Position numbers and translations under genes: made by a program. Positions 246 through 59,446 of a DNA stretch of 64,000 nucleotides are shown piece by piece. Position 1 is the first letter of the stretch. The number at the start of each line of letters is the position of its first letter. The notes below the pieces were generated by a model. It saw nothing but the letters and a program-made list of their open reading frames with translations. It did no database searches and had not been told where the DNA came from. Location of the stretch: the IMG/VR virus record IMGVR_UViG_3300012988_000001, positions 302,161 to 366,160 of that record; one strand, given 5' to 3'.

Positions 246-380
246 GCGTGACGTTACGTAGAGCACCGAACAGATATCCTAAGTCAGTCTAGAAATACTT
301 AGGAAGGAGTTAGTGTTATCTAGGGTATCATACGAGGTTGATCGCTCGTTGGTGTGGTTCGAGTCCACGGTTACGTACCA
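246..380 (+). ncRNA. tRNA-like RNA with greatly expanded anticodon arm (135 nt)
   Basis: GCGTGAC/GTTACGT acceptor stem, A + CCA end, canonical T-arm TGTGG-TTCGAGT-CCACG, variable hairpin ACGAG/CTCGT; anticodon arm replaced by an 8-bp stem with ~40-nt loop. Confidence 0.6.
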
Positions 381-553
381 CTTAAATCATTTACCTTTAG
401 ACTGTAGTTCGAAATGCAGAATATTGGGGTACATAACATCGCTTAAGGACTTCGTTTAGCGGCGAAGGGGATACGTGCAAGGGTTATGAAGAAAATACCG
501 GGAACGACTGGCTATGCCTTAGATGATTTATTTTTAATTAAAGGAGTACTGAA

Positions 554-2736: not shown

Positions 2737-2906
2737 TTAACTATATCTTTCGTGTAAGGGGTAAAGGTATTGTTCCCGGATTGACAGTTGTTCGTGCGTA
2801 CACTGCAACTGATGCTCGTGAAATGCTACTAGCTGAATTCAGCAAGCCCGAAGACGTTACGATCACTTTGGTTGAATGTAGTCAAGAATTATCGTTTTTA
2901 AACTAG
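2733..2906 (+). CDS. small hypothetical protein (57 aa, not in ORF track)
   Basis: ATGA overlap with upstream stop; MINYIFRVRGKG...SFLN*. Confidence 0.6.
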   Translation: MINYIFRVRGKGIVPGLTVVRAYTATDAREMLLAEFSKPEDVTITLVECSQELSFLN

Positions 2907-3007
2907 GACATATTGCGTGATCTGGTTTTATCGTGTAGAATGAGGCTAAAATCATTTGTAAATGCGTTAGAAGCGGAGTCGGGGTTGAATTCCCCGAATG
3001 TCCACCA
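2906..3007 (+). ncRNA. degenerate class II (Leu-like) tRNA or tRNA mimic
   Basis: GGACAT/ATGTCC acceptor, A+CCA, T-arm CGGGG-TTGAATT-CCCCG with non-canonical loop, 8-nt anticodon loop GGCTAAAA. Confidence 0.5.
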
Positions 3008-3009
3008 CC

Positions 3010-3097
3010 GGGAGAGTGATGGAAAGGCATACATAGGCATCTCCAGTGTCTTAGTCTTGATGACAATGCAAGGTTCGAGTCCTTGTCTCTCCCACCA
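3010..3097 (+). tRNA. atypical class II tRNA (Leu-like body, ambiguous anticodon TCC or CCA)
   Basis: GGGAGAG/CTCTCCC acceptor, A73+CCA, T-loop TTCGAGT, variable arm GTC/GAC; anticodon stem AGGCA/TGTCT with loop TCTCCAG; one extra pair between T and acceptor stems. Confidence 0.65.
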
Positions 3098-3245
3098 AAC
3101 AATAATACCTATCATCTAATATCAGTACTGGTGGCGTGTCGTCGAGGACGATGGACAGTACTGACAGGATACCTCGTTCGCCAGCAGTGGGTTCGGGGGA
3201 TGTACGTAAAGTCGTGCTGGGTATGCCAAATTATTTAAAAAACTT

Positions 3246-3545: not shown

Positions 3546-4127
3546 ATGAAATTAACCCTACGTAAAGCTCATCGTTTAGTTAAAGACCTACAGAACAAGT
3601 TAGGTGTTCGTAATGTTTCCAAGAACATTCACCACAGTGCTGACCTTGCTGAAGTAACAGCAACCATTGCACTTGTCGAAGGTCTAAACCGTGCTAGTGT
3701 TGAACAAACCCTAGACGTAGCAACAGCGATTAGTGAAATCCGTGCAGCAGTACAAGTACTAAACGCTCGTGACGTAGATGGTGATACCATCGATTCTCTA
3801 CTAAACGCTAAGGTTCTAGTAGAAACCAAGATGAAAGTACTTTCATCATTCGCGTATCCTACACAGCAGGATCAAGAAGGCCGTGAACTAGCGATTCGTC
3901 GCCAAGTTTCTGACGTTGCGAAACACGCTGGCTCAGGCATGTACCACAACGAAGTAACTGTTAGTGGTCACAGTGTTGATTCACATACCCTATTCAATGA
4001 ACAGTACGTTGCATTGAAACAGGAACAAGAACGCATTAGCGATAAGCTAGCGTACATCAATAACGCTCTACACGTAGAGATTGATGACAAGTATCTTGAA
4101 CTATTCAAGACACTACAAGTTTTATAA
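3546..4127 (+). CDS. coiled-coil protein (MKLTLRKA...) followed by structured non-coding RNA
   Basis: helical heptad pattern; biased codon usage suggesting high expression. Confidence 0.8.
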   Translation: MKLTLRKAHRLVKDLQNKLGVRNVSKNIHHSADLAEVTATIALVEGLNRASVEQTLDVATAISEIRAAVQVLNARDVDGDTIDSLLNAKVLVETKMKVLSSFAYPTQQDQEGRELAIRRQVSDVAKHAGSGMYHNEVTVSGHSVDSHTLFNEQYVALKQEQERISDKLAYINNALHVEIDDKYLELFKTLQVL

Positions 4128-5549: not shown

Positions 5550-5625
5550 GCGGTAGTAGCTCAGATGGTAGAGCGGGAGTTTTCCAAACTTCAGGTCTTC
5601 GGTTCGAAACCGAATTATCGCTCCA
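5550..5625 (+). tRNA. tRNA-Gly (TCC)
   Basis: 76-nt cloverleaf, D-arm GCTC/GAGC, loop TTTCCAA, TTCGAAA T-loop, U73 + CCA. Confidence 0.95.
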
Positions 5626-5636
5626 CGAGGTAAAAT

Positions 5637-6185
5637 ATGTATAATAAGAAGATAGAAATATCTGGCATTAACAATGGTTACCAATATTTTATTGATTATG
5701 AACATCCATTAGCAACCGGAAATTCAGGAAGGGTGTATTTACACCGTCACATCGCATCAATTAAAATTAGTCGATGGGTTACTGGTAATGAACATGTTCA
5801 CCATATTGATGAAAACAAACTTAATAATGATGAAGTTAATTTGGAAGTACTATCAGATCTTGAACATCGTCGTTTACATTGGAAAGAAAGAAATAATTTG
5901 CCAGATGATTACGAATGGTTTGATTCTGAAATTATTCCATGTAATTGGTGCTCAGAATTATTTCAAACGAAATATAAAGATCACATGTATTGTTCTATTA
6001 GTTGCGGATCATTAGCACAACCACAAAAATTCCCAATTGATAAAGATATATTATCCGAATTGATTTGGAAAATGCCAGCCACTGAGATAGCCAAAATATA
6101 TGGTTGCTCTGATAAAACCATCGGTAAAAAATGTAACCGATATAATATAACCAAACCACCACGCGGTTATTGGTTGCGTAAATAA
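5637..6185 (+). CDS. HNH homing endonuclease
   Basis: YLHRHIA...EHVHHIDENKLNN..NLEVLSDLEHRRLH HNH motif, CxxC and C-terminal HTH-like tail; sits next to a tRNA. Confidence 0.9.
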   Translation: MYNKKIEISGINNGYQYFIDYEHPLATGNSGRVYLHRHIASIKISRWVTGNEHVHHIDENKLNNDEVNLEVLSDLEHRRLHWKERNNLPDDYEWFDSEIIPCNWCSELFQTKYKDHMYCSISCGSLAQPQKFPIDKDILSELIWKMPATEIAKIYGCSDKTIGKKCNRYNITKPPRGYWLRK

Positions 6186-13129: not shown

Positions 13130-13378
13130 ATGAAATGTGACAAGGCCATAGAGAAAATGCGTCGGAATAAACGTAACTGGACTATTCCTAAGCTGAAAGT
13201 GATTGCTACACGTTGTGGTATGACTGTAGAATCAAATGGTTCAACACATCACGTATTCAGGGTAGAAGGTGTCAAAGAACACCTATCAATACCCTTTAAT
13301 GGTAAAGATATCCACCCGGATTATATTACCAAATTTTTACGTCTTATTGATAAGACAAAAACCGAAGGAGAACAGTAG
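13130..13378 (+). CDS. hicA: HicA-like mRNA interferase (dsRBD fold), no adjacent HicB
   Basis: WTIPKLKVIA..CGM.V..NGSTHHVFR....HLSIP...IHPDYITKFL.LI resembles HicA; GAGGTG SD. Confidence 0.7.
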   Translation: MKCDKAIEKMRRNKRNWTIPKLKVIATRCGMTVESNGSTHHVFRVEGVKEHLSIPFNGKDIHPDYITKFLRLIDKTKTEGEQ

Positions 13379-14637
13379 TGATTGCAGAGTATATGGCAAC
13401 CTTCAGTAGTATGATGAAGGAATATCCGTGGATGGTTGGTATCTATTCCCTATACGGGATGACAGTACTAACATATTGTTTAAAATTCATTCCCGGATTT
13501 TTTGGTTTTATTAAAGCTCAAAGTATTACAACACTAGAGCTAAACAACGCTGGCTGGAGTGGCAATGAAGCACACTTTCAAGCATTCATGGCGTGGTATC
13601 TAAAGAGTCCATATTCCAAATGGTCACGCTATCTTTCACTAGATGGAAAGTACTCTCGTTGGGATGATGACGAAGACGAAAGTCCAGATGGGAAGAAACG
13701 CAAAACATACGTAATTGGTGCTGGTTATGGTACACACTTCTTCTTCTATAAGAAGCGTCTATTCTGGTTCAGCAAAGGTTCACTACAAAGTACAGGTTCA
13801 GAAAAAGAGAAACAAAATATTGTTATTAAAACTCTCGGTCGTAACCAACAACCACTAATTGACTTAGTAGAAGATTTCGCTGTTAAACCAAAAGAAACTG
13901 ATCTAAACATCTTCTCATACAAAGAAGAATGGGATGTTATTTCGCGAGTTAACAAACGCCCACTATCATCTGTAATTCTACGTAAAGACATTAAAGATGC
14001 ATTAGTGAAAAATCTTGAGTACTTCTACTCTAATCGTGATTGGTATGTCAAACGTGGACTATCATATAAGCAAACTTATATTCTACACGGTCTACCGGGT
14101 ACAGGTAAAAGTAGTACAATTAAAGCACTAGCTTCACATTTCAACAAGAACATCTGCCTAATTGATATTACATCATTAGGAAATGCAGCGTTCGAGAAAG
14201 CAATGGCTTCAGTGCCTAAAAATAGTATTGTACTAATTGAAGACTTTGATTCATGTCGTGCTTTACATTCACGTGTAGAAGATGATAGTGATGATCCAGC
14301 ATCTAAGCTAGCAGAGCTAACCGAAGTGCTATCACTATCTAAAGTACTAAACGTACTAGATGGTGTAGTATCACTAGATGATACAGTTGTTTTCCTAACA
14401 ACCAACCATCTAGAGAAAATTGATGCAGCACTAATCCGTAAAGGTCGTGTTGATTACATTCACGAGATTCCATATCTTGAGGATGCAGAAGTAAAAGAGT
14501 ACATAAAGCTAATGTATCCAGAAGCTGAAGTACCACAAGTTACATTTGACACTATAGCAGGTTGTGATATTCAATCTAATTACCTAGAGCATCGCGAAGA
14601 TGTTAATGCATTCGTGGCAAGTCTAGCAGTCAAATAA
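13378..14637 (+). CDS. BCS1-like AAA+ ATPase with N-terminal membrane anchor
   Basis: TM segment, BCS1_N-like GxGxHFFFY region, Walker A GLPGTGKS, Walker B IEDFD, LNVLDG, TTNH..IDAALIRKGRVD. Confidence 0.85.
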   Translation: MIAEYMATFSSMMKEYPWMVGIYSLYGMTVLTYCLKFIPGFFGFIKAQSITTLELNNAGWSGNEAHFQAFMAWYLKSPYSKWSRYLSLDGKYSRWDDDEDESPDGKKRKTYVIGAGYGTHFFFYKKRLFWFSKGSLQSTGSEKEKQNIVIKTLGRNQQPLIDLVEDFAVKPKETDLNIFSYKEEWDVISRVNKRPLSSVILRKDIKDALVKNLEYFYSNRDWYVKRGLSYKQTYILHGLPGTGKSSTIKALASHFNKNICLIDITSLGNAAFEKAMASVPKNSIVLIEDFDSCRALHSRVEDDSDDPASKLAELTEVLSLSKVLNVLDGVVSLDDTVVFLTTNHLEKIDAALIRKGRVDYIHEIPYLEDAEVKEYIKLMYPEAEVPQVTFDTIAGCDIQSNYLEHREDVNAFVASLAVK

Positions 14638-23616: not shown

Positions 23617-24585
23617 GTGAAAAAACTAGATCTAGAATCAATCCACGATGAAGTACTAGACGAATGTTTCCATAATGAGAACGTAAAAGTGAGTAATCTT
23701 CTTGTTAACGACGATGAAGATATTGAGGTGACAACGACTCCAACCTCCGAATCTTACAATACAAAAGAACGTCTTCCTGCTGGTCTAACGAATGAAATTC
23801 TAATTGACCGTATCAATGCTGGTGTTGACGTATCTCGCAACATGGATATGCTAGTTCGCTGTAACAGTGGTCTAGTATATGCAATTGCACGTAAGTGTAC
23901 TTGTAATATTCCTTTCCAAGATAAAGTACAATATGGGTTCGAAGGTCTTATTCACGCAGTGCGTAAGTTCGATACTTCTAAGGGTATCTCTTTCAGTACT
24001 TATGCCAGTACTGCAATCCGTCAGACCATGTACAACTACGGTAACGAAGAAGCTCGTATGGTTGCATTGCCTAAGTATCAGTCAGTGAATAACGTAACTA
24101 TTCAAAACTTCATTGAACGTTTCATTAGTAATAATGGGCGTGTTCCAACAAATGAGCAGATTGCAGAAGGTACTAACATTGATCTAGTATCAGTTGGGCG
24201 TGTAATGCAGTACTCAAGTAATGCAATCAGTCTTGACACACCAGTGAACGACGATGGCTCTGTAATGCTACAGGACGTTATCAAAGGGGAAAGCTCTGAA
24301 TTCCACCTTGATCCGGGTCTAGTAACTGATGAGAGCATTATGAATGAATTACTCGAAGTAATATTCCAAGACCTTTCTGCTGATGACCGTGCATTGATTG
24401 AGGCGGTTCATGGCTTGAACAAGGATGATGAGAAATCCTTCTGGACTCTAGCTTCTGAGGGGTTCGTGTACACCGATAATAAGGGTCGCACGTACAGTTC
24501 ACGCACATCATTGCATCGTTGCTACAATGACGTTGTAGCTCGCATCCGTCGCCACATGGCAGATCGTGATATCAAAAGTAACTAA
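23617..24585 (+). CDS. sigma70-family RNA polymerase sigma factor
   Basis: region 2 (NSGLVYAIARK...G..GLI.AVRKFD.SKG..FSTYA) and region 3 (GRVPTNEQIAE...SLDTPV). Confidence 0.85.
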   Translation: MKKLDLESIHDEVLDECFHNENVKVSNLLVNDDEDIEVTTTPTSESYNTKERLPAGLTNEILIDRINAGVDVSRNMDMLVRCNSGLVYAIARKCTCNIPFQDKVQYGFEGLIHAVRKFDTSKGISFSTYASTAIRQTMYNYGNEEARMVALPKYQSVNNVTIQNFIERFISNNGRVPTNEQIAEGTNIDLVSVGRVMQYSSNAISLDTPVNDDGSVMLQDVIKGESSEFHLDPGLVTDESIMNELLEVIFQDLSADDRALIEAVHGLNKDDEKSFWTLASEGFVYTDNKGRTYSSRTSLHRCYNDVVARIRRHMADRDIKSN

Positions 24586-32018: not shown

Positions 32019-32996
32019 ATGGCTAAGATCGCAAAAACTAAAACTGATAACATCGGTGGTGTACTGTACGAAGCATCACGCAAATCTAAGATTCGTAACC
32101 CACGTTTCAAAGCTGCGTTCATAGCTTCTATTCCACGTGAGAAGAACTATTCCAAAACTGTTCATGCTCTGATTCACCGTTACAAACAAACTGGTGAACT
32201 CAAATGTGAATGCTGTGGTGCTGATAATGTTTACTTCAAATTTCACAAAGAGAATGGTCGCGTAACATTCAAGGCATTTGTTAAAACCGATAAAGGTGAA
32301 CAGCCTATGACTGTGGACCACGATATGCTTAAGTCGTTGGGTGGTGCTGATGGTGTAAGCAATTACAATCCAATGTGCTATCGTTGTAACCAGCTTCGTG
32401 GTTCACGTTTTGCTGGCTTTAAAGAGTTTAAAGAATGGTATGATGCACAGGAATACATCGATACTATTGCTGGTCTTCCTGATGCAAACTTTTGTTTCAT
32501 TGATTATTCTCTGAACAAAAACAACAATCAATTCTTCAACAACGTTGTTGGTGCGAAAACATTACCACCACGGTTAGTACAGGCAATGAAGAAAACAATG
32601 CGTACTTCAGCACCAGAACCTTTCGCACATATTAGTATGAAAGAGATGATTAACCTTGATCGTGATTATGCCAACCAATTACTTAATGAACTGGTTTACG
32701 AGCGTAGTACTAAAGTTAACGGATGCCGGGATGTGCCAATGGGCGAGCATGATTTCTTCATTGGTTGTACCAGTGCTGATCATCGTAAGATTAAGACTTA
32801 CATTGAAGAACACGTTAAGGCACAACTGCGTAAGCATAAAGCAATGCAGCACAAGATTAATGTTGAAAAACATACTGGTGCTGGTTATAAAGACTTTACT
32901 GAAGAAGTTAAAATGAAAGTGAAAGAAGTTAACGAAGTCAATACGTCCTTTACGTTCAAATCTTTGTGGATTAAATTCACAAATATCTTTGCATAA
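32019..32996 (+). CDS. HNH nuclease-domain protein
   Basis: CECCG...MTVDHDMLKSLGGADGVSNYNPMCYRCNQLRG. Confidence 0.8.
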   Translation: MAKIAKTKTDNIGGVLYEASRKSKIRNPRFKAAFIASIPREKNYSKTVHALIHRYKQTGELKCECCGADNVYFKFHKENGRVTFKAFVKTDKGEQPMTVDHDMLKSLGGADGVSNYNPMCYRCNQLRGSRFAGFKEFKEWYDAQEYIDTIAGLPDANFCFIDYSLNKNNNQFFNNVVGAKTLPPRLVQAMKKTMRTSAPEPFAHISMKEMINLDRDYANQLLNELVYERSTKVNGCRDVPMGEHDFFIGCTSADHRKIKTYIEEHVKAQLRKHKAMQHKINVEKHTGAGYKDFTEEVKMKVKEVNEVNTSFTFKSLWIKFTNIFA

Positions 32997-51014: not shown

Positions 51015-51028
51015 GGGGCTTTTCTTTT
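51001..51028. terminator. bidirectional terminator
   Basis: AAAAGCCCC-agta-AGGGGCTTTT between convergent units. Confidence 0.8.
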
Positions 51029-52193
51029 ATGGAATATAGTACGGAACTGTAGTATCAATTGAATAAATTGGATGTGATGGCGTAAACACTGATCCAGTAC
51101 CATACAATTTACCATTGTATACAAACACTGTACCTGATAACATTTTACCCGGAAATAAAAACTCATTATAATCGGTGGGTGTTGGTGTACCTGAACTTAA
51201 TACATATGAAGAAAGTACTGCTGTACTCCCATTACCATTACCGTATTGGTTACCATTACCGACAGAATATATACCAGTAGTTGCAATAACACTTACTGTA
51301 TTACTACTCTGTTGTGAAGGCATTAACTTGACTGGTGTTGCAGCAGTACCACCAGTACCGAATTGTGTGGAAAGAGCAAACGTCAATTGGTTTCCAGTAG
51401 TTGCACCATTACCACCAAACGCCGCATTTCCAGCAAAAAGAACAACTTTCTTGGTCGAACTATTAGTCTGTGCGATAAGTTGGACAAAATCAGAACCTGC
51501 AACAACATCAGTGATTAGTGGATATGTAGTAACGACTGTTGAACTAGTACTTTGTGTCCATGTATTAACTTGTGTAGTATTGTTATTACCAAATTGTCCA
51601 TTGGCGTTATATCCAGCGAACCATACTTTATTTGAGGTATCAATATGAGCAGCACTTCGATTATGTATTGAGATTTTTAATACACCACTTTTGATCAAGA
51701 ATGGCGTTCCATATCTTGTCCCAACTGCCCCAGAACCTAATGCACCTTCTAAGTTATAACCCATACCATACATATTACCCGCATTATCAAGTATTAGTGT
51801 ACTGTACTGTCCAAACTTCATATCTACAATTGTATTAAGCGGAATCACAGGACTGATTGTTGTTATTTGGGTCCACACTTGAGTACTACTACTTCCGGTG
51901 GCTAACATCGTATACTGTAATCCACACCAGTAAGTAGTATCATCGTTTTTAATAATAAACGTGGTATAGTTCGATGAATAAAAATCACGAACATTTGTAT
52001 TTGTTAATGTCCACGTTGTTCTAGGGCTGTTGTCACCTAAACCAAAGTTACCAAATCCTTGACCTCCTAGGCAATACAACTCACCGTTATCATATAGGAT
52101 AAAGATACCACCAGTACTGGTACTAACTTTCTTTATTTTTGGTGCTTCTGGTAATATATTACCATATTTTACTATTCTTGCGAATGGAATCAT
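51027..52193 (-). CDS. MIPFARI-family protein, RCC1-like beta-propeller
   Basis: MIPFARIVKYGN; G.N..G.LG repeats. Confidence 0.85.
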   Translation of the reverse strand: MIPFARIVKYGNILPEAPKIKKVSTSTGGIFILYDNGELYCLGGQGFGNFGLGDNSPRTTWTLTNTNVRDFYSSNYTTFIIKNDDTTYWCGLQYTMLATGSSSTQVWTQITTISPVIPLNTIVDMKFGQYSTLILDNAGNMYGMGYNLEGALGSGAVGTRYGTPFLIKSGVLKISIHNRSAAHIDTSNKVWFAGYNANGQFGNNNTTQVNTWTQSTSSTVVTTYPLITDVVAGSDFVQLIAQTNSSTKKVVLFAGNAAFGGNGATTGNQLTFALSTQFGTGGTAATPVKLMPSQQSSNTVSVIATTGIYSVGNGNQYGNGNGSTAVLSSYVLSSGTPTPTDYNEFLFPGKMLSGTVFVYNGKLYGTGSVFTPSHPIYSIDTTVPYYIP

Positions 52194-52203
52194 TATTTTT
52201 CTC

Positions 52204-53295
52204 CTACGGTAATTGTATTTCAGTAAATGAAGTGGAATTTATATTAAAAACAGAAAGTGCACTGCTACCAGTACCAGTAGCATATAACTTACTATCAACA
52301 ACAACAAATACGCAGTTGTTTGAAGAACTGGACACCCATTCAACATTCGTCAATGGTAACCCAGATGAATACCTACCAAACTGTGAATGTGTTACCAAAT
52401 CACCAGTACCCAATGTATTGTTATCATTGCGACCTGCACTATATAATCCACTTTGTGGATTAGCACTGGCAAAGATGTTATCACCACACGCACCAGACTG
52501 CACCAAATCGCCTGTAGCGTTACCAATGCCTGTCCATTGACCCGAACTACCATTGGTGTTCAAAAACGTGCTACCACACGCATAGGCGACATTTGAATAG
52601 TTCACAGCATAAGTCGCTGCTCCGTTTGTAACCACATCACGGATGTTTGTCATTGTGGATGCTCCCAACGGACCTGAACTAGATGCCCCAGTACTACGCC
52701 CCAATTGACCACCACCGTTATATCCACCACAGTATAATGAACCGTCTTTCAGTACAACACATGTAACATTACTACATGAGAATATCTTAGCTCCATCTGC
52801 ATATACATATTGCGGCGTAGATGTAGTACTGTATATTTCCCCATATGTATTATAACCACGTGTGTATACTTTGCCATCAGTTAATAAGTAAACCATACCA
52901 GTACTTGTTAATGTAATATCGGCAATCGTATCTAGTGTAAAATGTGTAAAGTTTGGAGTAACATCAGTCCAGACCGTATTTTGAGTACCAGAACTTGAAG
53001 CAGTATACAATGACTGTCTTCCGATATGCCACCATGTACCATCTTCGGTGATGGCTAATGCACATTTATCACCATAACCACAATATAAACGTTGTACATT
53101 ACTTCTTATTAATTTAAATGCACCGGGACTAGAAACTCCATCGGGATATACGGAAGCATCACTTCCTCTAGCATACAAATCACCATTTTGATATAATATA
53201 AACAATGTATTATTGTTCATTATTGCCATTTTTTTAATATTCTTTAAGTCCGGGGCAATATTACCGTACTTACTTATTCTTGCAAATGGTATCAT
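52204..53295 (-). CDS. MIPFARI-family protein, RCC1-like beta-propeller
   Basis: MIPFARISKYGN; GYNGGGQLG, GRNDNNTLGTG. Confidence 0.85.
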   Translation of the reverse strand: MIPFARISKYGNIAPDLKNIKKMAIMNNNTLFILYQNGDLYARGSDASVYPDGVSSPGAFKLIRSNVQRLYCGYGDKCALAITEDGTWWHIGRQSLYTASSSGTQNTVWTDVTPNFTHFTLDTIADITLTSTGMVYLLTDGKVYTRGYNTYGEIYSTTSTPQYVYADGAKIFSCSNVTCVVLKDGSLYCGGYNGGGQLGRSTGASSSGPLGASTMTNIRDVVTNGAATYAVNYSNVAYACGSTFLNTNGSSGQWTGIGNATGDLVQSGACGDNIFASANPQSGLYSAGRNDNNTLGTGDLVTHSQFGRYSSGLPLTNVEWVSSSSNNCVFVVVDSKLYATGTGSSALSVFNINSTSFTEIQLP

Positions 53296-53344
53296 ATTGT
53301 TATCCTTTATTTTATCTCTTTTTATATTTAAGTACTCAAATTAC

Positions 53345-54076
53345 TTAAGGATATAAGTTAGTTAAACTGAAATTGGCATTAACCACTAAATCCTTACGAA
53401 CCCTGTATCTATCTACGTATGTATGGTTTGAACCATTGTTATTTACATGTCCACCTATTCCAAATCTAGTTGCACCAGTTGGTGTTGGAAATGTAAATGT
53501 AAAAGTATCTACTTGAACCCCGTTGATAAAGAAATAACTATTCTTTGTAACAGAATCATATGAATACAAAATATGTTTCCATACATTAGTACTTAATCCT
53601 GCATATAAAGTTCCTGAACGAGAAGTACTTGTCCCGGCATATTGATAGTATACATTGGGATTAAAAGGAAACCATGCCATTAGTTTAGGGTTATTATTGG
53701 AAGCCGTTATATAATGTCCAAATGGTATAGTTTCTAATGAACCATTGGAGATTTGTCTTTGCCAAAAATCTACAGTAAATGACTGACTACTCCCAAGCTG
53801 CACGGAAAGAACAGTACTGTCTAAACTACTAACTAATCCCGCAGCCAAGTTTATTATATTTGTACCGTATGGCCCTGTACTGTCAATCATTAAATTGGGA
53901 CGTAAGTATCCAGCATTCTGCATTTCCAAGGTCATAGTATTACCTACATAATCAGTAAATCCATTACTGGAAAAATTATTACCATCCCACGCCATTACTA
54001 CATTACTATCAGTATACCAAGGTGGACTAATTGGTAATGTATTACCATATTTTGATATTCTTGCAAATGGTATCAT
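53345..54076 (-). CDS. MIPFARI-family protein, LamG/ConA-like domain
   Basis: FTVDFW...WKHI...FINGVQ...GIGG...DRYRV. Confidence 0.85.
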   Translation of the reverse strand: MIPFARISKYGNTLPISPPWYTDSNVVMAWDGNNFSSNGFTDYVGNTMTLEMQNAGYLRPNLMIDSTGPYGTNIINLAAGLVSSLDSTVLSVQLGSSQSFTVDFWQRQISNGSLETIPFGHYITASNNNPKLMAWFPFNPNVYYQYAGTSTSRSGTLYAGLSTNVWKHILYSYDSVTKNSYFFINGVQVDTFTFTFPTPTGATRFGIGGHVNNNGSNHTYVDRYRVRKDLVVNANFSLTNLYP

Positions 54077-54087
54077 ATTTTGTCCTA

Positions 54088-54759
54088 TTATTTTATCTCT
54101 TTTATATTTAAGTATTTTATATATCCAGTAAAGGCAGAACTCAATCCCTTAAAGTATCCCCCAATACCAAATGTAGTGCTAGCACCAAATGGTTGGTTTG
54201 TGCCAGTAACTGTACCCTGTTGTACTCCGTTCATATCGTATATGGTTGCCGTTGTTGTCAATCCAATGCGTGTAATGACAACACGCCTCCATGCATTATC
54301 AACTGCACCAGTTACGTAGTTACGCCAATAATCACTTATTGTGTTACCAGTAGTGAATATCTGTGCTTGTCCTGAAGTTTGGTGTATTTGATAGCATATC
54401 CCTGTACTCCAGTTTGCGGCATCAGGATAATAACCAGTTCCCCATACCAATGCGGTTGATCCCGCTGAACTTAAATATTCAAATTCCATGACCCAGTTTT
54501 TAGTACTCAAATCTAACGCTGAATTTGATGTTATAGGAGAACCAAATATAGCTCCGGTGAAATACATCACATTACCAGCACTTGTATTATCGTAAACAAC
54601 CGATGCCGCACCGGAATTTAATTTTGTAAAAACATTTGCATGTGAACTATTATCAACAATATTAGTATCTCCTACAGTACTTTTTCTAAAATCAACGTCC
54701 AATAACGTTAAATCTGTAACAGTATTACCATATTTGCTTATTCGTGCAAAAGGTATCAT
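54088..54759 (-). CDS. MIPFARI-family protein, LamG/ConA-like domain
   Basis: WRRVVITR...FGIGG...FTGYI. Confidence 0.85.
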   Translation of the reverse strand: MIPFARISKYGNTVTDLTLLDVDFRKSTVGDTNIVDNSSHANVFTKLNSGAASVVYDNTSAGNVMYFTGAIFGSPITSNSALDLSTKNWVMEFEYLSSAGSTALVWGTGYYPDAANWSTGICYQIHQTSGQAQIFTTGNTISDYWRNYVTGAVDNAWRRVVITRIGLTTTATIYDMNGVQQGTVTGTNQPFGASTTFGIGGYFKGLSSAFTGYIKYLNIKEIK

Positions 54760-54770
54760 ATTTTCTCTCC

Positions 54771-55478
54771 TTAATAATGTATTCCCGCTCTCATTCTATA
54801 CCTATCAATCGCCGCAGTAAAATTAGCATTGTCTACGGTCCTGATGCTAGCTGTTGTTGTTGCACCCGGTGATGCTAATGTTCTAGTAACTGAACCCTGA
54901 TATACTTCATTAATATAAAATTTCAACAGTCCCGAAGACTTCTCATATGTAATAGCATGATGCTGCCATACTCCTTGACCATAATATGCAGTAGTAGGCC
55001 AAGAACTATAAGAAACTGGTGCACCACTGTTATTCCATAAGTGCACATATCCCGGCTGATTACCACCACTATATGCTATTAATATTCTTGATGTAGAAGC
55101 AATAGCAGAAAACGGAGTGTTAATCGCTAATGGATATAAATGCACTACCGCAGGATATACATACGCATCAAGTTGTTTAGTGTGATAATCTATAGTCCAA
55201 TCATTATCTATATAATTTCCAATAGGAAAACTACTAGCTCCTATGTTCCAATATATACCACCACTTTTAATCATCAAACCAGTACCAAACGGTGAATCTG
55301 GATAACTCTCTATAGTACTAGTTGCCGCACCACCATTACCCTTTAACAATGGTACACCATTATAATCAGTCCATCCACTTGTACCAACAATTCTAGTACT
55401 GTCAAATGCAATTAATGTATCTTTATACCACGGATCTGGTCTATTTCCGTAAGTACTTATTCTTGGAAAAGGTATCAT
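54771..55478 (-). CDS. MIPFPRI-family protein, LamG/ConA-like domain
   Basis: WTIDY...WQHHAITY...FYIN...IDRYRMRAG. Confidence 0.85.
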   Translation of the reverse strand: MIPFPRISTYGNRPDPWYKDTLIAFDSTRIVGTSGWTDYNGVPLLKGNGGAATSTIESYPDSPFGTGLMIKSGGIYWNIGASSFPIGNYIDNDWTIDYHTKQLDAYVYPAVVHLYPLAINTPFSAIASTSRILIAYSGGNQPGYVHLWNNSGAPVSYSSWPTTAYYGQGVWQHHAITYEKSSGLLKFYINEVYQGSVTRTLASPGATTTASIRTVDNANFTAAIDRYRMRAGIHY

Positions 55479-55479
55479 A

Positions 55480-56613
55480 TTAACTCACTCCCACTAATGT
55501 AGATTTAACTAGATTTATATTACCAGTATTAACACCCAATTGATATGCTAAACTATTACCACCCATAACAACACCAGTTTTCTGTAATGATATATACTGA
55601 ATAGAGGTAGCACTTTCAGTACTTGGAGTATAAATTTTAGTAATAACTTCATCAACATTTTTATTAGCACGACCAACATATGACCCAACTGAATCAAATG
55701 ACGAAGTTCTATTCACATTTCTACCACCAGCATTCAGTACTGTAGGAGTAGCAGTAAGTACATAATACGAACTCTCATAGTTCAAACCAAATAACTTAAC
55801 TCCACTAGCCATTAAAGTATTATTAAATGTTGGCCTGTTTAGATTTCCGTCCAACTCACCATTTAAATTACCATCACCATATAGTGTCCCAGTATCATCT
55901 AAGTACATAATACTCGCCCCACTTCCACATGCAATCTGAACTATATTACTAGCTGCTGTTCTCTGTATCCATGCTGTAGTACTAATATATGTTCCAAATC
56001 CAAATCCAGTACCAACCGCACGAACTGAACCAGCACCCCATACTGTACCATCATTAAGCAACAATGTACTATATGCACTACTACCTTCACTTGTAACAAA
56101 TGTATGAAACATATCTTTAATGTTATTCTTACTGCTCAAAGTCCATGTACTAATCAATCCAGTACTTGCATTTCCAAATCTACCGTTAGTTCCCGCTCCA
56201 CGGAAGTATAATGTACCATCATTTAATAGTATCATAGCACTCGCATTAGTACTGCATTGTATTTTCTTAATATTAATCGCACTAAACGGTAAAGTCATCA
56301 CTGTTGGAACAGAAACCACACCTCCACTATCAAAAGATACGGCTACGCCTATACGGTATAGCGTAGTGTTTTTAACATACATCGTGAATTGATATCCACA
56401 AAACATAGCTGATACTCCAGTATCAACCAATACAAAGGTAGAAGTCGTAGTTATTAAACTATTGTTTAGAATGTTGTTAGTATTTGTTCCTCGTCCCCAC
56501 AAGTTACCATCACTGTCTAAAACCAATGCATGTGACCTAGATACCTGTATATCAACTATATTTTTAATCTTAACTGAATTACCATATTTGGATATTCTAG
56601 CAAACGGTATCAT
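55480..56613 (-). CDS. MIPFARI-family protein, RCC1-like beta-propeller
   Basis: HALVLDSDGNLWGRGTN, GTNGRFG. Confidence 0.85.
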   Translation of the reverse strand: MIPFARISKYGNSVKIKNIVDIQVSRSHALVLDSDGNLWGRGTNTNNILNNSLITTTSTFVLVDTGVSAMFCGYQFTMYVKNTTLYRIGVAVSFDSGGVVSVPTVMTLPFSAINIKKIQCSTNASAMILLNDGTLYFRGAGTNGRFGNASTGLISTWTLSSKNNIKDMFHTFVTSEGSSAYSTLLLNDGTVWGAGSVRAVGTGFGFGTYISTTAWIQRTAASNIVQIACGSGASIMYLDDTGTLYGDGNLNGELDGNLNRPTFNNTLMASGVKLFGLNYESSYYVLTATPTVLNAGGRNVNRTSSFDSVGSYVGRANKNVDEVITKIYTPSTESATSIQYISLQKTGVVMGGNSLAYQLGVNTGNINLVKSTLVGVS

Positions 56614-56716
56614 ATTTTTTTACCCTCCCTTAAGGTAATCTCATCAATTATCTCTAAAGATACTTATTATGTATTTAACCAAAAAAAGGCCAGTACAGTC
56701 AATGTACTGACCCATC

Positions 56717-57364
56717 TTATACACTCATTGTCATCCTGTAATTATCTATTATCCCTATTAATGGTATAGCATTATCAGTACTATTACCAATCCTCAATGT
56801 ATTCGAAGATGAACTAAAACCTAAACTCATCACCTGTGATGTACCAATCTGTACATCATTAAGCCAAAAAGATAAGTTCGTACCAACTCTCTGTAACTTA
56901 ATCTTGAACCAAGTATTAATCGGTAACTTAGTAGAACCAACACCGAATCGGAATCTCTGTACCGATCCTGTAGTACTGTAACCATCTAACGATATCTGAC
57001 TAGCTGCACCAAACACGTTGTTTAATGTAACCCAATAAGATCCAGTACCTAAGTTATTATTTAAATTACCAACTAATATCTGCGTAGCAGTAGAAGTCAA
57101 ATACACATTACTCTCAATAACAAAATTAGTACTGTTACCTATACTAAACACCGATGGAACTCCACCAGAACCTATCTGCAAATATCCAGATGCTGGAAAT
57201 TGTATAGCATTATTCTGCGAAGTCACAAAATTAGTCGGTGTAACATTTATGTTTGAACTCTTTACCACAAAATCATGCATCTGATTCTGTAGTACTGAGA
57301 TTATTTTATTTGGATTGTCATACGAAGTATTCCCGTATTTCACTATCCTTGCAAAAGGTATCAT
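56717..57364 (-). CDS. MIPFARI-family protein, LamG/ConA-like domain
   Basis: NTWFKIKLQRVG...LRIG...GIIDNYRMT. Confidence 0.85.
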   Translation of the reverse strand: MIPFARIVKYGNTSYDNPNKIISVLQNQMHDFVVKSSNINVTPTNFVTSQNNAIQFPASGYLQIGSGGVPSVFSIGNSTNFVIESNVYLTSTATQILVGNLNNNLGTGSYWVTLNNVFGAASQISLDGYSTTGSVQRFRFGVGSTKLPINTWFKIKLQRVGTNLSFWLNDVQIGTSQVMSLGFSSSSNTLRIGNSTDNAIPLIGIIDNYRMTMSV

Positions 57365-58518
57365 TCTAAACCTCCCGGTAAATCCAATTTAACAAATGGT
57401 GCATTAACAATCGAACCCTGTCCAACACAGTAACCAACGCAGTATAGAGTACTTTTACCATCTACATCTTGATATAACACGTACATGTTTTTGTTACCAG
57501 ATGAAGTCCCACCGTTACCGCATATGAACTTAATATCACTGGAATTAAAACCACTAGGCATTGCTCTTATATTCACAACACTTCCACTGTTACTGTTAGA
57601 CGAACTAGCAATCGGCAACTGATTTGATGAATACGCACCAAGCATTAGCGTTGTTATTCCTATTCCACATCCAGCAAACGCAGCAACTCGTCTTGGTGCA
57701 TTAGATGCAGCAGTTAAGGTATTATTAAAACTAGCGACACCAGTTAATGAACCACAATGTACCGCCCTACCATCACTCAATATACCAGTACTGAATGTTC
57801 CACCATTCGCCATCTGATAATCTGTATAAGCTAATGTTCCCAATTTAGTGAACGAAAAAAACGTACTAGTTGCAGCAGAACTAATTAATCTGTTACTATT
57901 CGAACCTATACCATATAAGAACCCATCAGTACCCTGAATGATAAAAACAAACCCACTTGCAGTTTGCTCGAATGATATCATTTTTTCAACTGTTACTACA
58001 CTCGATGTGTTTAATCTCCATGTGCGATCTATAACAGTACTGCCATCTGCTAATGTCAACGCTACACTATATAATGTATTATCATATGTTAATATAGCAA
58101 CATAATTTGTATGATTATATATCTGCTTAATACCCTTTGCCAAAATTTCCGCAGGGATATGATCAGTAACATCCAACCATGATAAATTAGATGTTGGTAA
58201 GTTTGGAGTACTAAACTTCGCCGCTAATATTGAACCACATACATATACTTTATCATCATTTGTAACTGCTATTGTACTAGCCAGTCTATTTGAACTAAAT
58301 GATTTAACATTTGAGATATTACTTTTGTACCAACCCTGATTTGCAGTTGAAACAGTTGTCCCAATTCCCATAGACCCACTCGAAGTATATCCAAATGCCC
58401 ACATTTCACCATCAGCCGTTAATAACATCAAATGTGTATCGTTTGCTTGTAAATCTTTAATCTTTTGTAACCCCGCTACGGTATTACCATATTTGCTTAT
58501 TCTAGCAAAAGGTATCAT
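57361..58518 (-). CDS. MIPFARI-family protein, RCC1-like beta-propeller
   Basis: HLMLLTADGEMWAFG..SGSMGIG. Confidence 0.85.
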   Translation of the reverse strand: MIPFARISKYGNTVAGLQKIKDLQANDTHLMLLTADGEMWAFGYTSSGSMGIGTTVSTANQGWYKSNISNVKSFSSNRLASTIAVTNDDKVYVCGSILAAKFSTPNLPTSNLSWLDVTDHIPAEILAKGIKQIYNHTNYVAILTYDNTLYSVALTLADGSTVIDRTWRLNTSSVVTVEKMISFEQTASGFVFIIQGTDGFLYGIGSNSNRLISSAATSTFFSFTKLGTLAYTDYQMANGGTFSTGILSDGRAVHCGSLTGVASFNNTLTAASNAPRRVAAFAGCGIGITTLMLGAYSSNQLPIASSSNSNSGSVVNIRAMPSGFNSSDIKFICGNGGTSSGNKNMYVLYQDVDGKSTLYCVGYCVGQGSIVNAPFVKLDLPGGLE

Positions 58519-58528
58519 GTCTCTCTCC

Positions 58529-59446
58529 TTATGTTAACTTAAATGCTTGTGTTGTCGTTGCACCAGAATTATTCTTTCCACCCATAGTGAGTATAAAATT
58601 ATTCGCACTATTCGCGAATATATTACAGTTCACCAAATAACTAGGAACCGTACCCATAGACTCAATAGAAGAATTACCCGGAACATATGTGTACATATTA
58701 CCAGTACTATAACCAAACAATACAACAATGTCTTTATATGCAGCTATACGCCCTATAGCCTCTGTAGTGCTCAATATGACTCGCCACGTCCCAGACACCG
58801 TATTATACCCCATTAGGTATAACGTGCTCCCTGTGCCTCCCATAACCAATAATTCAGTACCAACCAACACCATGCTCGTTCCCAATGCCATAGGATATGG
58901 GGAAGTGGCTAATGTCGTCCACGTTGAAGTACTGATATCAAATACTGACGCTGTGTTAGCCGCCGCTAATGTACTATAAGAACCAAACAACCACAACTTA
59001 TTATCATAACATACCATAGAAGCATGTAATCTGGCTGCTGGTTTCGTCCCTAAAGTATTAACTAAACTCCACGCATTAGTACTGACATTATATACATATA
59101 AATCGTTCTGCATACTTCCACCCGCTGGTAATGATGTACTACCACCAAATGAATATACTCTGTTATTAACATCATCAAATGCCATTGCTGGTGCACTTCG
59201 GTTTGAACCAAATTGTGCTAGCTGTGTCCAGTTATTAGTACTAGGATTATATCTCCAAAAGTCTCGGTAATATGTATTGGTCAGTACTCCACCCATAGCA
59301 TATATCTCTCCTGTACTCGCCGCACAAAAACCCATCTCCGCTCTTGTACTCATTGCACTGTAAGTCTGTGCTTCGTAATTTCCTAAGAATGAATTTTGTG
59401 GTATAATCACATTCCCGTACTTTACTATCCTCGCAAAAGGTATCAT
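58529..59446 (-). CDS. MIPFARI-family protein, Kelch-repeat beta-propeller
   Basis: IYAMGG..WRYNP..NNW, VYSFGG..YNV..NAW, LLVMGG. Confidence 0.85.
   Translation of the reverse strand: MIPFARIVKYGNVIIPQNSFLGNYEAQTYSAMSTRAEMGFCAASTGEIYAMGGVLTNTYYRDFWRYNPSTNNWTQLAQFGSNRSAPAMAFDDVNNRVYSFGGSTSLPAGGSMQNDLYVYNVSTNAWSLVNTLGTKPAARLHASMVCYDNKLWLFGSYSTLAAANTASVFDISTSTWTTLATSPYPMALGTSMVLVGTELLVMGGTGSTLYLMGYNTVSGTWRVILSTTEAIGRIAAYKDIVVLFGYSTGNMYTYVPGNSSIESMGTVPSYLVNCNIFANSANNFILTMGGKNNSGATTTQAFKLT

Follow-up and report, generated by a model that had tools for sequence, protein, structure and literature searches.

Phages and prophages encode RNAs such as ROOL and GOLLD, whose function is unknown, whose genes lie near those of transfer RNAs (tRNAs), and which form RNA-only multimers through loop contacts. 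In phage T4, two further RNAs of unknown function, RNAC (species 1 RNA) and RNAD, have been detected by Northern blot as stable products of the tRNA region (PMC3014915; PMC9697503), while the tRNA region of phage phiTE encodes pseudo-ToxI, a non-coding RNA that neutralizes a host RNase toxin by mimicry of ToxI, in which C27-U28 contact ToxN (PMC3475682). Here, we describe a tRNA-like RNA gene at positions 246-380 (plus strand) of a 64,000-nucleotide (nt) stretch of viral DNA, hereafter the window, which corresponds to positions 302,161 to 366,160 of IMG/VR record IMGVR_UViG_3300012988_000001 and is part of a 366-kilobase (kb) viral contig. The gene specifies 135 nt, encoded CCA included, and is located at the end of a tRNA array on the same strand (Ser, Tyr, Pro, Asn, Asp, Lys, and Glu), from which it is separated by several degenerate tRNA-like sequences. 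A second locus, L028, is identical over the RNA and reaches upstream of the window start. As detailed below, the 246-380 RNA belongs to an unannotated and apparently undescribed family of phage tRNA-like RNAs, and our literature search found nothing relevant on its loop sequence, on phage tRNAs having 8-nt loops, or on tRNA-like RNAs of crAss-like phages.

Among described RNAs, T4 RNAC appears to be the closest analog. Both RNAC and RNAD resemble the 246-380 RNA in their length (119-139 nt), their location at the end of a phage tRNA cluster, and their orientation on the tRNA strand, and RNAC has the same order of parts: a closing 5'/3' stem, a long 5' hairpin, and a hairpin just before a canonical T arm. 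In the window, the closing stem is a 7-base pair (bp) acceptor stem in which GCGUGAC (246-252) forms 7/7 pairs, two of them G.U, with GUUACGU (370-376), followed by discriminator A377 and the encoded CCA at 378-380; the same ACCA end is found in the copies from Salmonella phage 7t3 and from viral loci L003 and L102. Thus, the acceptor stem, discriminator, and CCA that an earlier note on this DNA had listed as kept can all be read in the sequence. The T arm (353-369, UGUGG/UUCGAGU/CCACG, with its strands at 353-357 and 365-369) is canonical rather than strictly perfect, as that note had called it, since its first pair is U.G. A short variable region, UGG (350-352), precedes it, and 1-5 nt occupy the same place in 28 tabulated family members. 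Directly upstream is a hairpin (332-349) having a 5-bp stem, ACGAG/CUCGU, and an 8-nt loop, GUUGAUCG, at 337-344. Farther 5' is a conserved GGG (323-325), the counterpart of the D-loop G18/G19 that dock on the T loop; in family members of canonical size, it lies within the D loop. There is also a weak D stem in which GUUA (253-256) forms 3/4 pairs with UAUC (326-329). We assigned it by analogy to AUCA/UGAU in 7t3 and UAAC/GUUA in the crAss-like phage copies, and it is the least certain of the helices.

The RNA also contains a 64-nt insertion at 259-322 that would fold as one long hairpin (pair probabilities of 0.82-0.98 under a core constraint). Its base consists of a 4-bp helix, a 2-nt bulge on a single strand, and a second 4-bp helix (259-262/319-322 and 263-266/313-316), and its upper stem, CCUAAGU/ACUUAGG (278-284/297-303), displays a 12-nt apical loop, CAGUCUAGAAAU, at 285-296 that holds the self-complementary hexamer UCUAGA. 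The earlier note had recognized this upper hairpin, and the helix indeed covaries in homologs, but it had placed the insertion in the anticodon loop, whereas the insertion sits in the D loop, directly 5' of the conserved GGG. The anticodon arm proposed in that note, GATATCCT/AGGGTATC, corresponds to a genuine complementarity between 273-280 and 322-329 around 41 nt. As a stem it is disfavored, because the fold containing it reaches -32.6 kcal/mol compared to -36.6 kcal/mol for the core-constrained fold, a cost of 4 kcal/mol, and has an ensemble probability of 0.002. Energy, ensemble probability, and homology all led us to reject it as the anticodon stem, which would also bury the GGG that is unpaired in homologs. 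The unconstrained minimum free energy fold yields the acceptor stem, the T arm, and both hairpins.

Compared to the canonical tRNA model (RF00005), the 246-380 RNA shares the 7-bp acceptor stem, the discriminator, the CCA, the 5-bp T stem with a UUCGANU loop, the GG(G) of the D region, and the setting in a tRNA array, but its anticodon-position loop is 8 nt long and lacks purine 37, its D loop carries the 64-nt hairpin, its D stem is weak, and neither RF00005 nor ARAGORN detects it. ARAGORN called neither a tRNA nor a transfer-messenger RNA (tmRNA) at 246-380, and Rfam gave no match there, whether at the gathering score or at E<=10, the latter run both on 12 kb and on a 171-nt slice. Three copies of the T-loop motif GGTTCGANTCC are present in the window, compared to 0.02 expected, and the other two belong to an ordinary tRNA-Leu and to a tRNA-Gly-like RNA having an extra hairpin.

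A distant BLAST search found the 3' core of the RNA in Salmonella phages 7t3, Munch, SE_PL, and PHA46 and in Klebsiella phage fENko-Kae01, where the copies fill an unannotated gap that starts 4 nt past the tRNA-Glu CCA, after an Asn-Asp-Lys-Glu tRNA block. A pattern scan added a syntenic copy in the 360-kb viral contig L003, likewise after an Asn-Asp-Lys-Glu block. The proteins flanking the copies are 26-84% identical across the three lineages (window, 7t3, and L003), with the nearest ones only 26-45% identical. Across the same lineages, four helices differ in sequence with their pairing retained. The acceptor stem is GCGUGAC/GUUACGU in the window, GUAUAGA/UCUAUAU in 7t3, and GGGGAGC/ACUUCCU in L003 (6/7 pairs); the hairpin before the T arm is ACGAG/CUCGU, AAGAG/CUCUU, and UUGAG/CUCGA, respectively; the T stem is UGUGG/CCACG, GUGGG/CCUAC, and CUUGG/CCAAG; and the upper stem of the large hairpin is CCUAAGU/ACUUAGG, GAUAUUA/UAAUAUC, and UCCAGA/UUUGGA. 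Two loops are constant in all three, namely GUUGAUCG and an apical loop containing GUCUAGR. These helices were compared segment by segment, because MAFFT misaligned the divergent 5' halves of the four jumbo-phage copies submitted to RNAalifold, which recovered the anticodon-position hairpin and a portion of the T arm but nothing else. When the L003 and L102 copies were compared to named phages by BLAST, no match resulted.

Varying stems combined with constant loops are the hallmark of a functional RNA rather than of a decaying pseudogene. The possibility that 246-380 is simply a tRNA pseudogene without function, decaying freely in relatives as the earlier note had allowed, has some basis in the degenerate tRNA-like sequences of the same cluster (3851-3936 and 3939-4017 of L028, and 2906-3007 of the window) and in the failure of every detector to recognize the RNA. 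However, compensatory changes keep its helices between phages whose neighboring proteins are just 26-45% identical, its loops are conserved while its stems vary, and the family recurs in unrelated phage groups. The homolog covariation check suggested in that note came out in favor of the RNA, and the pseudogene interpretation seems largely refuted and highly improbable. It would regain ground if the homologs were chance matches that do not truly align, but the covariation statistics and covariance model scores given below speak against this.

Further members were sought by scanning reference genomes, viral contigs, and metagenomes for sequence patterns and then running BLAST from the matches; the scan patterns fixed TT[AG]AT[CT][AG] in the loop, and most members were found in this manner. 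The same core is present in the Vequintavirinae CR3, CR9, phiTE, CB7, and KaOmega, in the Ackermannviridae phage IME250 (loop AUUGAUCA), in the crAss-like Buchavirus genomes cr60_1, cr113_1 (AUUGAUUG), and cr109_1 (GUUAAUUG), and in many tRNA clusters of uncultured phages from metagenomes. It is unannotated in all of the named phages that were checked (7t3, Munch, fENko-Kae01, CR3, CR9, phiTE, IME250, and cr60_1/cr113_1/cr109_1). In an alignment of 28 distinct cores (A1), 89.6% of the cells in two helices are paired, and the covariation score is 0.69 compared to 0.19 in shuffles, with 0/500 shuffles reaching 0.69; the signal collapses once the helix partners are slid. The anticodon-position stem is 97.9% paired, with changes on both sides in four of its five pairs, and most of the aligned cores have GGG 6-10 nt upstream of this hairpin. 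With a covariance model built on A1, R1, family members reach 42-65 bits, whereas ordinary tRNAs do not exceed 29 bits. Positions 320-377 score 55.2 bits and are the only family-level match within the 64-kb window. The window copy has all of the defining features of the family: the 5-bp hairpin, the 8-nt loop, the 1-5 nt linker, the T arm, the acceptor strand, and the GGG ahead. The earlier proposal of a tRNA mimic is therefore borne out in the sense of a conserved tRNA-like RNA that is not a canonical tRNA. In contrast, T4 RNAC scores 26.9 bits on R1, which is within the range of ordinary tRNAs, and its pre-T loop is CGUCAA rather than R-UURAUY-R. In addition, two U.U mismatches interrupt the RNAC closing stem, and its CCA is not encoded. 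Thus, the T4 RNAs are alike in architecture, but we do not consider them true homologs.

We also scanned 185,579 bacterial and archaeal species, each through one representative genome. As only one clear member was found, the family is essentially phage-borne; the other matches were due to chance, and some were genuine variable arms of tRNA-Ser. The sole clear bacterial member is a compact copy on the chromosome of a Dehalococcoidia metagenome-assembled genome (L143, 3649-3720, minus strand). It is directly downstream of a pair of genes encoding a HEPN (NTase_sub_bind) protein and a minimal nucleotidyltransferase and beside a gene for a NucS-like nuclease-domain protein, a setting that looks like a toxin-antitoxin or defense island.

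Family members occur in compact and expanded forms. The compact ones (L060, L042, L122, L087, and the crAss-like cr113 type) form 67-75-nt cloverleaves in which the D arm is normal, and ARAGORN either missed the family members or mostly reported 2- or 4-base 'anticodons'. Because the compact homologs cr113, L060, L042, and L122 have a single arm between the D and T arms, the 332-349 hairpin is the equivalent of the anticodon arm rather than a long variable arm. The expanded members have 49-111 nt between the acceptor 5' strand and the hairpin, placed 5' of the conserved GGG. In crAss-like phages, a compact 72-nt form and an expanded 165-nt form have the acceptor stem, the D stem UAAC/GUUA, and everything 3' of the GGG in common, and they differ by ~94 nt inserted in the D loop. 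The distal acceptor strand of these expanded forms covaries with the 3' strand (U-A, U.G, and C-G), while a proximal duplicate decays. A shorter window RNA that begins at the proximal strand GUGUUAU was rejected on the same grounds, since this strand forms 6/7 pairs compared to 7/7 for the distal strand, which also fits the 7t3 boundary. Two side observations concern these forms. Locus L087 carries tandem members on the minus strand (714-784 and 799-872), one with the 8-nt loop GUUGAUCG and the other with a 7-nt loop, UUGAUCG, that ARAGORN labels tRNA-Ile(GAU). The Kolpuevirus 'frurule' (L035, ~1463-1633) encodes a tRNA-like RNA of ~170 nt between tRNA-Arg and tRNA-Asn that has the crAss D-loop hairpin, including its loop UGUAGGCUAGCAAG, as do the Buchavirus copies of another crAss family, while the loop of its pre-T hairpin differs (AAAGGUACAG). 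Comparison of the Kolpuevirus and Buchavirus RNAs suggests that the insertion module, separately from the core, may move or be conserved.

Of the two conserved loops on display, the anticodon-position loop has the consensus R-UURAUY-R, and the insertion loop has the consensus (G/U)CUAG(A/G/C), with GUCUAGR in 7t3 and L003 and GCUAGC in the crAss-like and Kolpuevirus copies. Both loops of the window copy are palindromic (UGAUCG, counting G.U, and UCUAGA), and the loops always contain UGA, UAA, or UAG. We considered whether the RNA might self-assemble, with its palindromic loops forming kissing-loop homodimers or chains whose function lies in the multimer. Such self-association would recall ROOL and GOLLD, although these RNAs are 500-800 nt long and not tRNA-shaped, and Rfam found neither in the window. 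The anticodon-position variants UGAUCA, UGAUUG, and UAAUUG are all self-complementary, counting G.U, as are the insertion-loop variants UCUAGG, GCUAGC, GCUAGU, and ACUAGU; the path GAUC to GAUU to AAUU in the crAss-like core is compensatory, and the duplex energies of the stronger loop variants are -4.4 to -8.2 kcal/mol. However, the pattern TT[AG]AT[CT][AG] used in the search means that three of the four possible combinations at positions 4 and 7 pair by construction, duplexes of the UGAUUG and UAAUUG variants have energies close to 0 kcal/mol, the L107/L116 lineage breaks the palindrome with its loop GUUAAUCG, and the CR3-type copies are without a palindromic second loop. The chance of a palindrome in both loops is also as high as a few percent. 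On balance, we regard self-assembly as unlikely. Since the scan patterns fixed the loop and unforced variants are few, the palindromes are not separable on present data from readings based upon stop triplets or pairing with the tRNA-Ile anticodon, and the same is true of the reading of these loops as ToxI bait, which is considered next.

Within the insertion, positions 279-296 match ToxI repeat positions 17-34 at 16/18, which takes in C27, U28, and the AA^AU cleavage site; we verified the repeat in pECA1039, and it was found in 75 plasmid records in all, mostly enterobacterial. At 287-296, GUCUAGAAAU supplies a ToxI-type 3' tail, GCUAGAA, including C27-U28 as well as the AA^AU site. A second ToxI-like stretch of 28 nt at 392-419 (plus strand), 12 nt past the CCA, is 22/28 identical to repeat positions 11-38, and it is uncertain whether it belongs to the 246-380 feature. 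In a more daring reading, the tRNA body would be a phage display scaffold in which a non-decoding core secures RNase P/CCA maturation and stability while short functional RNA modules are swapped into the D loop and the anticodon-position loop; in this jumbo phage, the CUAGAA^AU bait of the insertion, together with the stretch just 3' of the CCA, would blunt ToxN-type abortive-infection RNases. The ToxI match is real, but statistically it is marginal: by chance, ~5 matches as strong would be expected in 64 kb when both strands are counted, the adjacency has p ~0.01, and the window has four matches of at least 24, compared to 4-8 in simulated sequence. Furthermore, 7t3 and L003 lack both the AAAU site and the 392-419 stretch, and instead of a tandem array of ~36-nt ToxI repeats there is just a pair of partial matches, of 18 nt and 28 nt, that are 112 nt apart. 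Unlike phiTE pseudo-ToxI, the 246-380 RNA is without tandem 36-nt repeats or a complete pseudoknot unit, and its match is short and near the chance level for 64 kb. We consider the display-scaffold reading, ToxN bait included, to be improbable. Two related arrangements were observed in other carriers. The phiTE pseudo-ToxI (L006, 2947-3010) is ~1 kb from the phiTE family member and is flanked by tRNA-like pieces (UAGCUCAG ... GGUUCGAAC ... CCACCA), with the D-arm-like UAUAGCUCAG before it and a 3' piece, AGGUC...GGUUCGAAC...CCACCA, after it. It is placed as if inserted in a degenerate tRNA, and Rfam identified no tRNA in the phiTE pseudo-ToxI region. In CR3, a single ToxI-like unit (L016, 3587-3628) begins right at the CCA of tRNA-Gly.

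The anticodon-position loop bears directly upon whether the RNA could serve in translation, whether as an Ile-type tRNA having an unusual loop, as a quadruplet or frameshift reader, or after its insertion is spliced out. In favor of this idea, L064 and the second L087 copy have the 7-nt loop UUGAUCG, which ARAGORN reads as Ile-GAU; the G-to-A loop variant would give AAU, again an Ile anticodon; the compact crAss-like cr113 copy scores 26.5 bits on the Rfam tRNA model, just below its 29-bit threshold; and compact and expanded forms coexist. However, most of the loops are 8 nt long, and rather than the 7-nt loop with U33 and purine 37 of a decoding tRNA, GUUGAUCG puts C and G at the would-be positions 37 and 38. 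The insertion lies at the elbow contacted by the ribosome and RNase P, and an ordinary tRNA-Ile(GAU) is encoded besides in some carriers, CR3 and L060 among them. As for the unrecognized small intron suggested in the earlier note, the insertion is indeed a discrete module, but no known bacterial or archaeal intron type fits. A group I intron needs >=200 nt with a P1-P9 core and is usually located in the anticodon loop, while the insertion is a simple 64-nt hairpin in the D loop, and the Rfam intron families were unmatched. The 3-4-3 junction of an archaeal-type bulge-helix-bulge intron is likewise not found at the insertion base, and we know of no bacterium that has the splicing enzyme for such introns. 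Given an 8-nt loop with a pyrimidine at the purine-37 position and an inserted hairpin that would block the elbow, the RNA probably has no role on the ribosome, and its participation in decoding seems very unlikely. A tmRNA tRNA-like domain was rejected as well: the 3:70 pair of the 246-380 RNA is G-C rather than the alanine identity pair G3.U70, and Rfam, like ARAGORN, yields no tmRNA.

We also considered a function in cis, in which the tRNA-like fold would recruit RNase P or RNase Z to cut the cluster transcript and thereby give a downstream messenger RNA a defined and stable 5' end, with the excised RNA having no function in trans. Consistent with such punctuation, the crAss-like Buchavirus copy follows a terminator-like hairpin and ends ~18 nt ahead of the DNA primase start codon, while the 246-380 RNA lies 173 nt upstream of an open reading frame (ORF) at 554-946, with intervening sequence (470-593) that is 81% identical in L003, and no promoter or terminator consensus was found flanking the RNA. 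A processing signal, however, would require just the acceptor stem and the T arm, which leaves both the conserved apical loop of the inserted hairpin and the preservation of the 8-nt loop across unrelated phage families unexplained, and in most phages processing sites are already provided by the tRNA arrays within which the family RNA lies. Consequently, cis punctuation appears improbable. Least probable of all is the YrlA-like Y RNA proposed in the earlier note, which would tether a Ro (Rsr) protein. YrlA is also a tRNA-mimicking non-coding RNA having a T-arm-like module, and all that speaks for it here is the broad notion that a microbial genome may encode a tRNA mimic, because the topology is the opposite: the 246-380 termini form an acceptor stem ending in ACCA, while those of YrlA lie in the Ro-binding stem and its acceptor-like end is closed. 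The 171-nt slice was unmatched in Rfam at E<=10, and a Pfam scan covering 20 window ORFs found no TROVE/Ro domain among them. We therefore regard a Y RNA as exceedingly unlikely.

Our preferred interpretation, to which we assign a probability of roughly 0.4, is that the 246-380 RNA is a functional, tRNA-derived, non-decoding RNA that acts as a decoy or sponge and engages an RNA-directed host factor, for example a defense nuclease that cuts tRNA or RNA. A decoy, in that case for anticodon nucleases or uncharged-tRNA sensors, had also been proposed in the earlier note and is plausible. The acceptor stem, A73, CCA, canonical T arm, and D-loop-type GGG should together confer a tRNA-like L shape, and the comparison of homologs shows a tRNA-shaped core under purifying selection that carries two conserved displayed loops and a modular D-loop insertion and is almost confined to phages. 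Since the RNA would not act on the ribosome, the tRNA body may be a scaffold for maturation and stability, and the loops may be the working parts. According to this scenario, the RNA would be cotranscribed with the tRNA cluster, as suggested by their shared strand and by the lack of any consensus for a promoter or terminator in the vicinity. It would then be released by RNase P and 3' trimming, as for its tRNA neighbors, and accumulate as a stable RNA of ~135 nt whose two displayed loops engage the host factor. T4 RNAC and RNAD behave in this manner as stable RNAs of a tRNA region, and phiTE pseudo-ToxI provides a precedent for an RNA decoy. Several points weigh against this interpretation. 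The conservation of the loop is partly built in by the search pattern, and natural loop variants are few. The folding-energy z-score of the RNA is -1.16, which is not significant, and because its folding energy is not unusual, the case depends upon the comparison of homologs. In addition, the window copy has a weak D stem, it is uncertain where the L003 copy begins (6/7 pairs), and a comparison of neighbors identified no protein partner consistently encoded beside the family RNAs. Finally, the decoy role is drawn from anatomy and precedent alone.

Other unusual RNAs are encoded near the 246-380 RNA. Just upstream of the window start, L028 contains two aberrant tRNA-like genes after tRNA-Glu (3851-3936 and 3939-4017), one of which ARAGORN calls tRNA-??? 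with a 4-base anticodon (ctgg), while the other has a non-canonical T loop, UUAGAUU. In the window, a CCA-ended tRNA-like RNA at 2906-3007, called by no tool, consists of an acceptor GGACAUA/AAUGUCC (6/7 pairs), one long hairpin, and a T arm, CGGGG-UUGAAUU-CCCCG, followed by A and CCA. Directly downstream (3010-3097), ARAGORN calls an 86-nt tRNA-Gly(UCC) that has an extra pre-T hairpin, GUC[UUGAU]GAC, at 3054-3064. Its L003 homolog is 94% identical overall, with the 5-nt loop CUAGU in place of UUGAU, and both motif types (UUGAU and CUAG, or UGA vs UAG) recur in the two 246-380 loops. The next 135 nt (3098-3232) are 82-86% identical to Klebsiella and E. coli jumbo phages of the RaK2, K64-1, and EJP2 types, in whose records the sequence is unannotated or placed under 'hypothetical protein', and the first 6 kb of the window contain no other near-identical DNA. 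Its fold has a 5'/3' closing stem and the end GGUAUG-CCA (3220-3228), and it is probably another structured RNA; no copy of the 246-380 type was found near its counterpart in RaK2/K64-1-type phages. Between the 246-380 RNA and the ORF at 554-946, positions 470-593 are 81% identical to L003 12481-12602, while the flanking proteins are 26-33% identical, and the segment may be a conserved leader, a promoter region, or another RNA. Among the protein-coding genes of the window, HNH endonuclease ORFs were found among 5637-6185 and 32019-32996, one of them beside tRNA-Gly (5550-5625), and the ORFs scanned in 51-59 kb include four RCC1-repeat proteins and one Kelch-repeat protein (51027-59446, minus strand). 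A BCS1-type AAA ATPase (13378-14637) and a sigma-70-like factor (23617-24585) are encoded as well.

Phage tRNA clusters are usually annotated by tRNA finders alone, hence the family RNA is unannotated in the named phages that were checked. A non-decoding tRNA look-alike common to jumbo, rV5-like, Ackermannviridae, and crAss-like phages points to a common host interaction, and it provides a comparative handle on the purpose of the T4 tRNA-region RNAs RNAC and RNAD. Should the scaffold idea be true, the tRNA body would be a natural counterpart of the engineered 'tRNA scaffold' that stabilizes recombinant RNAs, and should the display-scaffold reading be true, the phiTE pseudo-ToxI, the CR3 ToxI-like unit, and the 246-380 family would all be variations on one strategy. 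The cultured carriers make the family tractable for asking whether phages counter tRNA- or RNA-directed defenses with RNA decoys.

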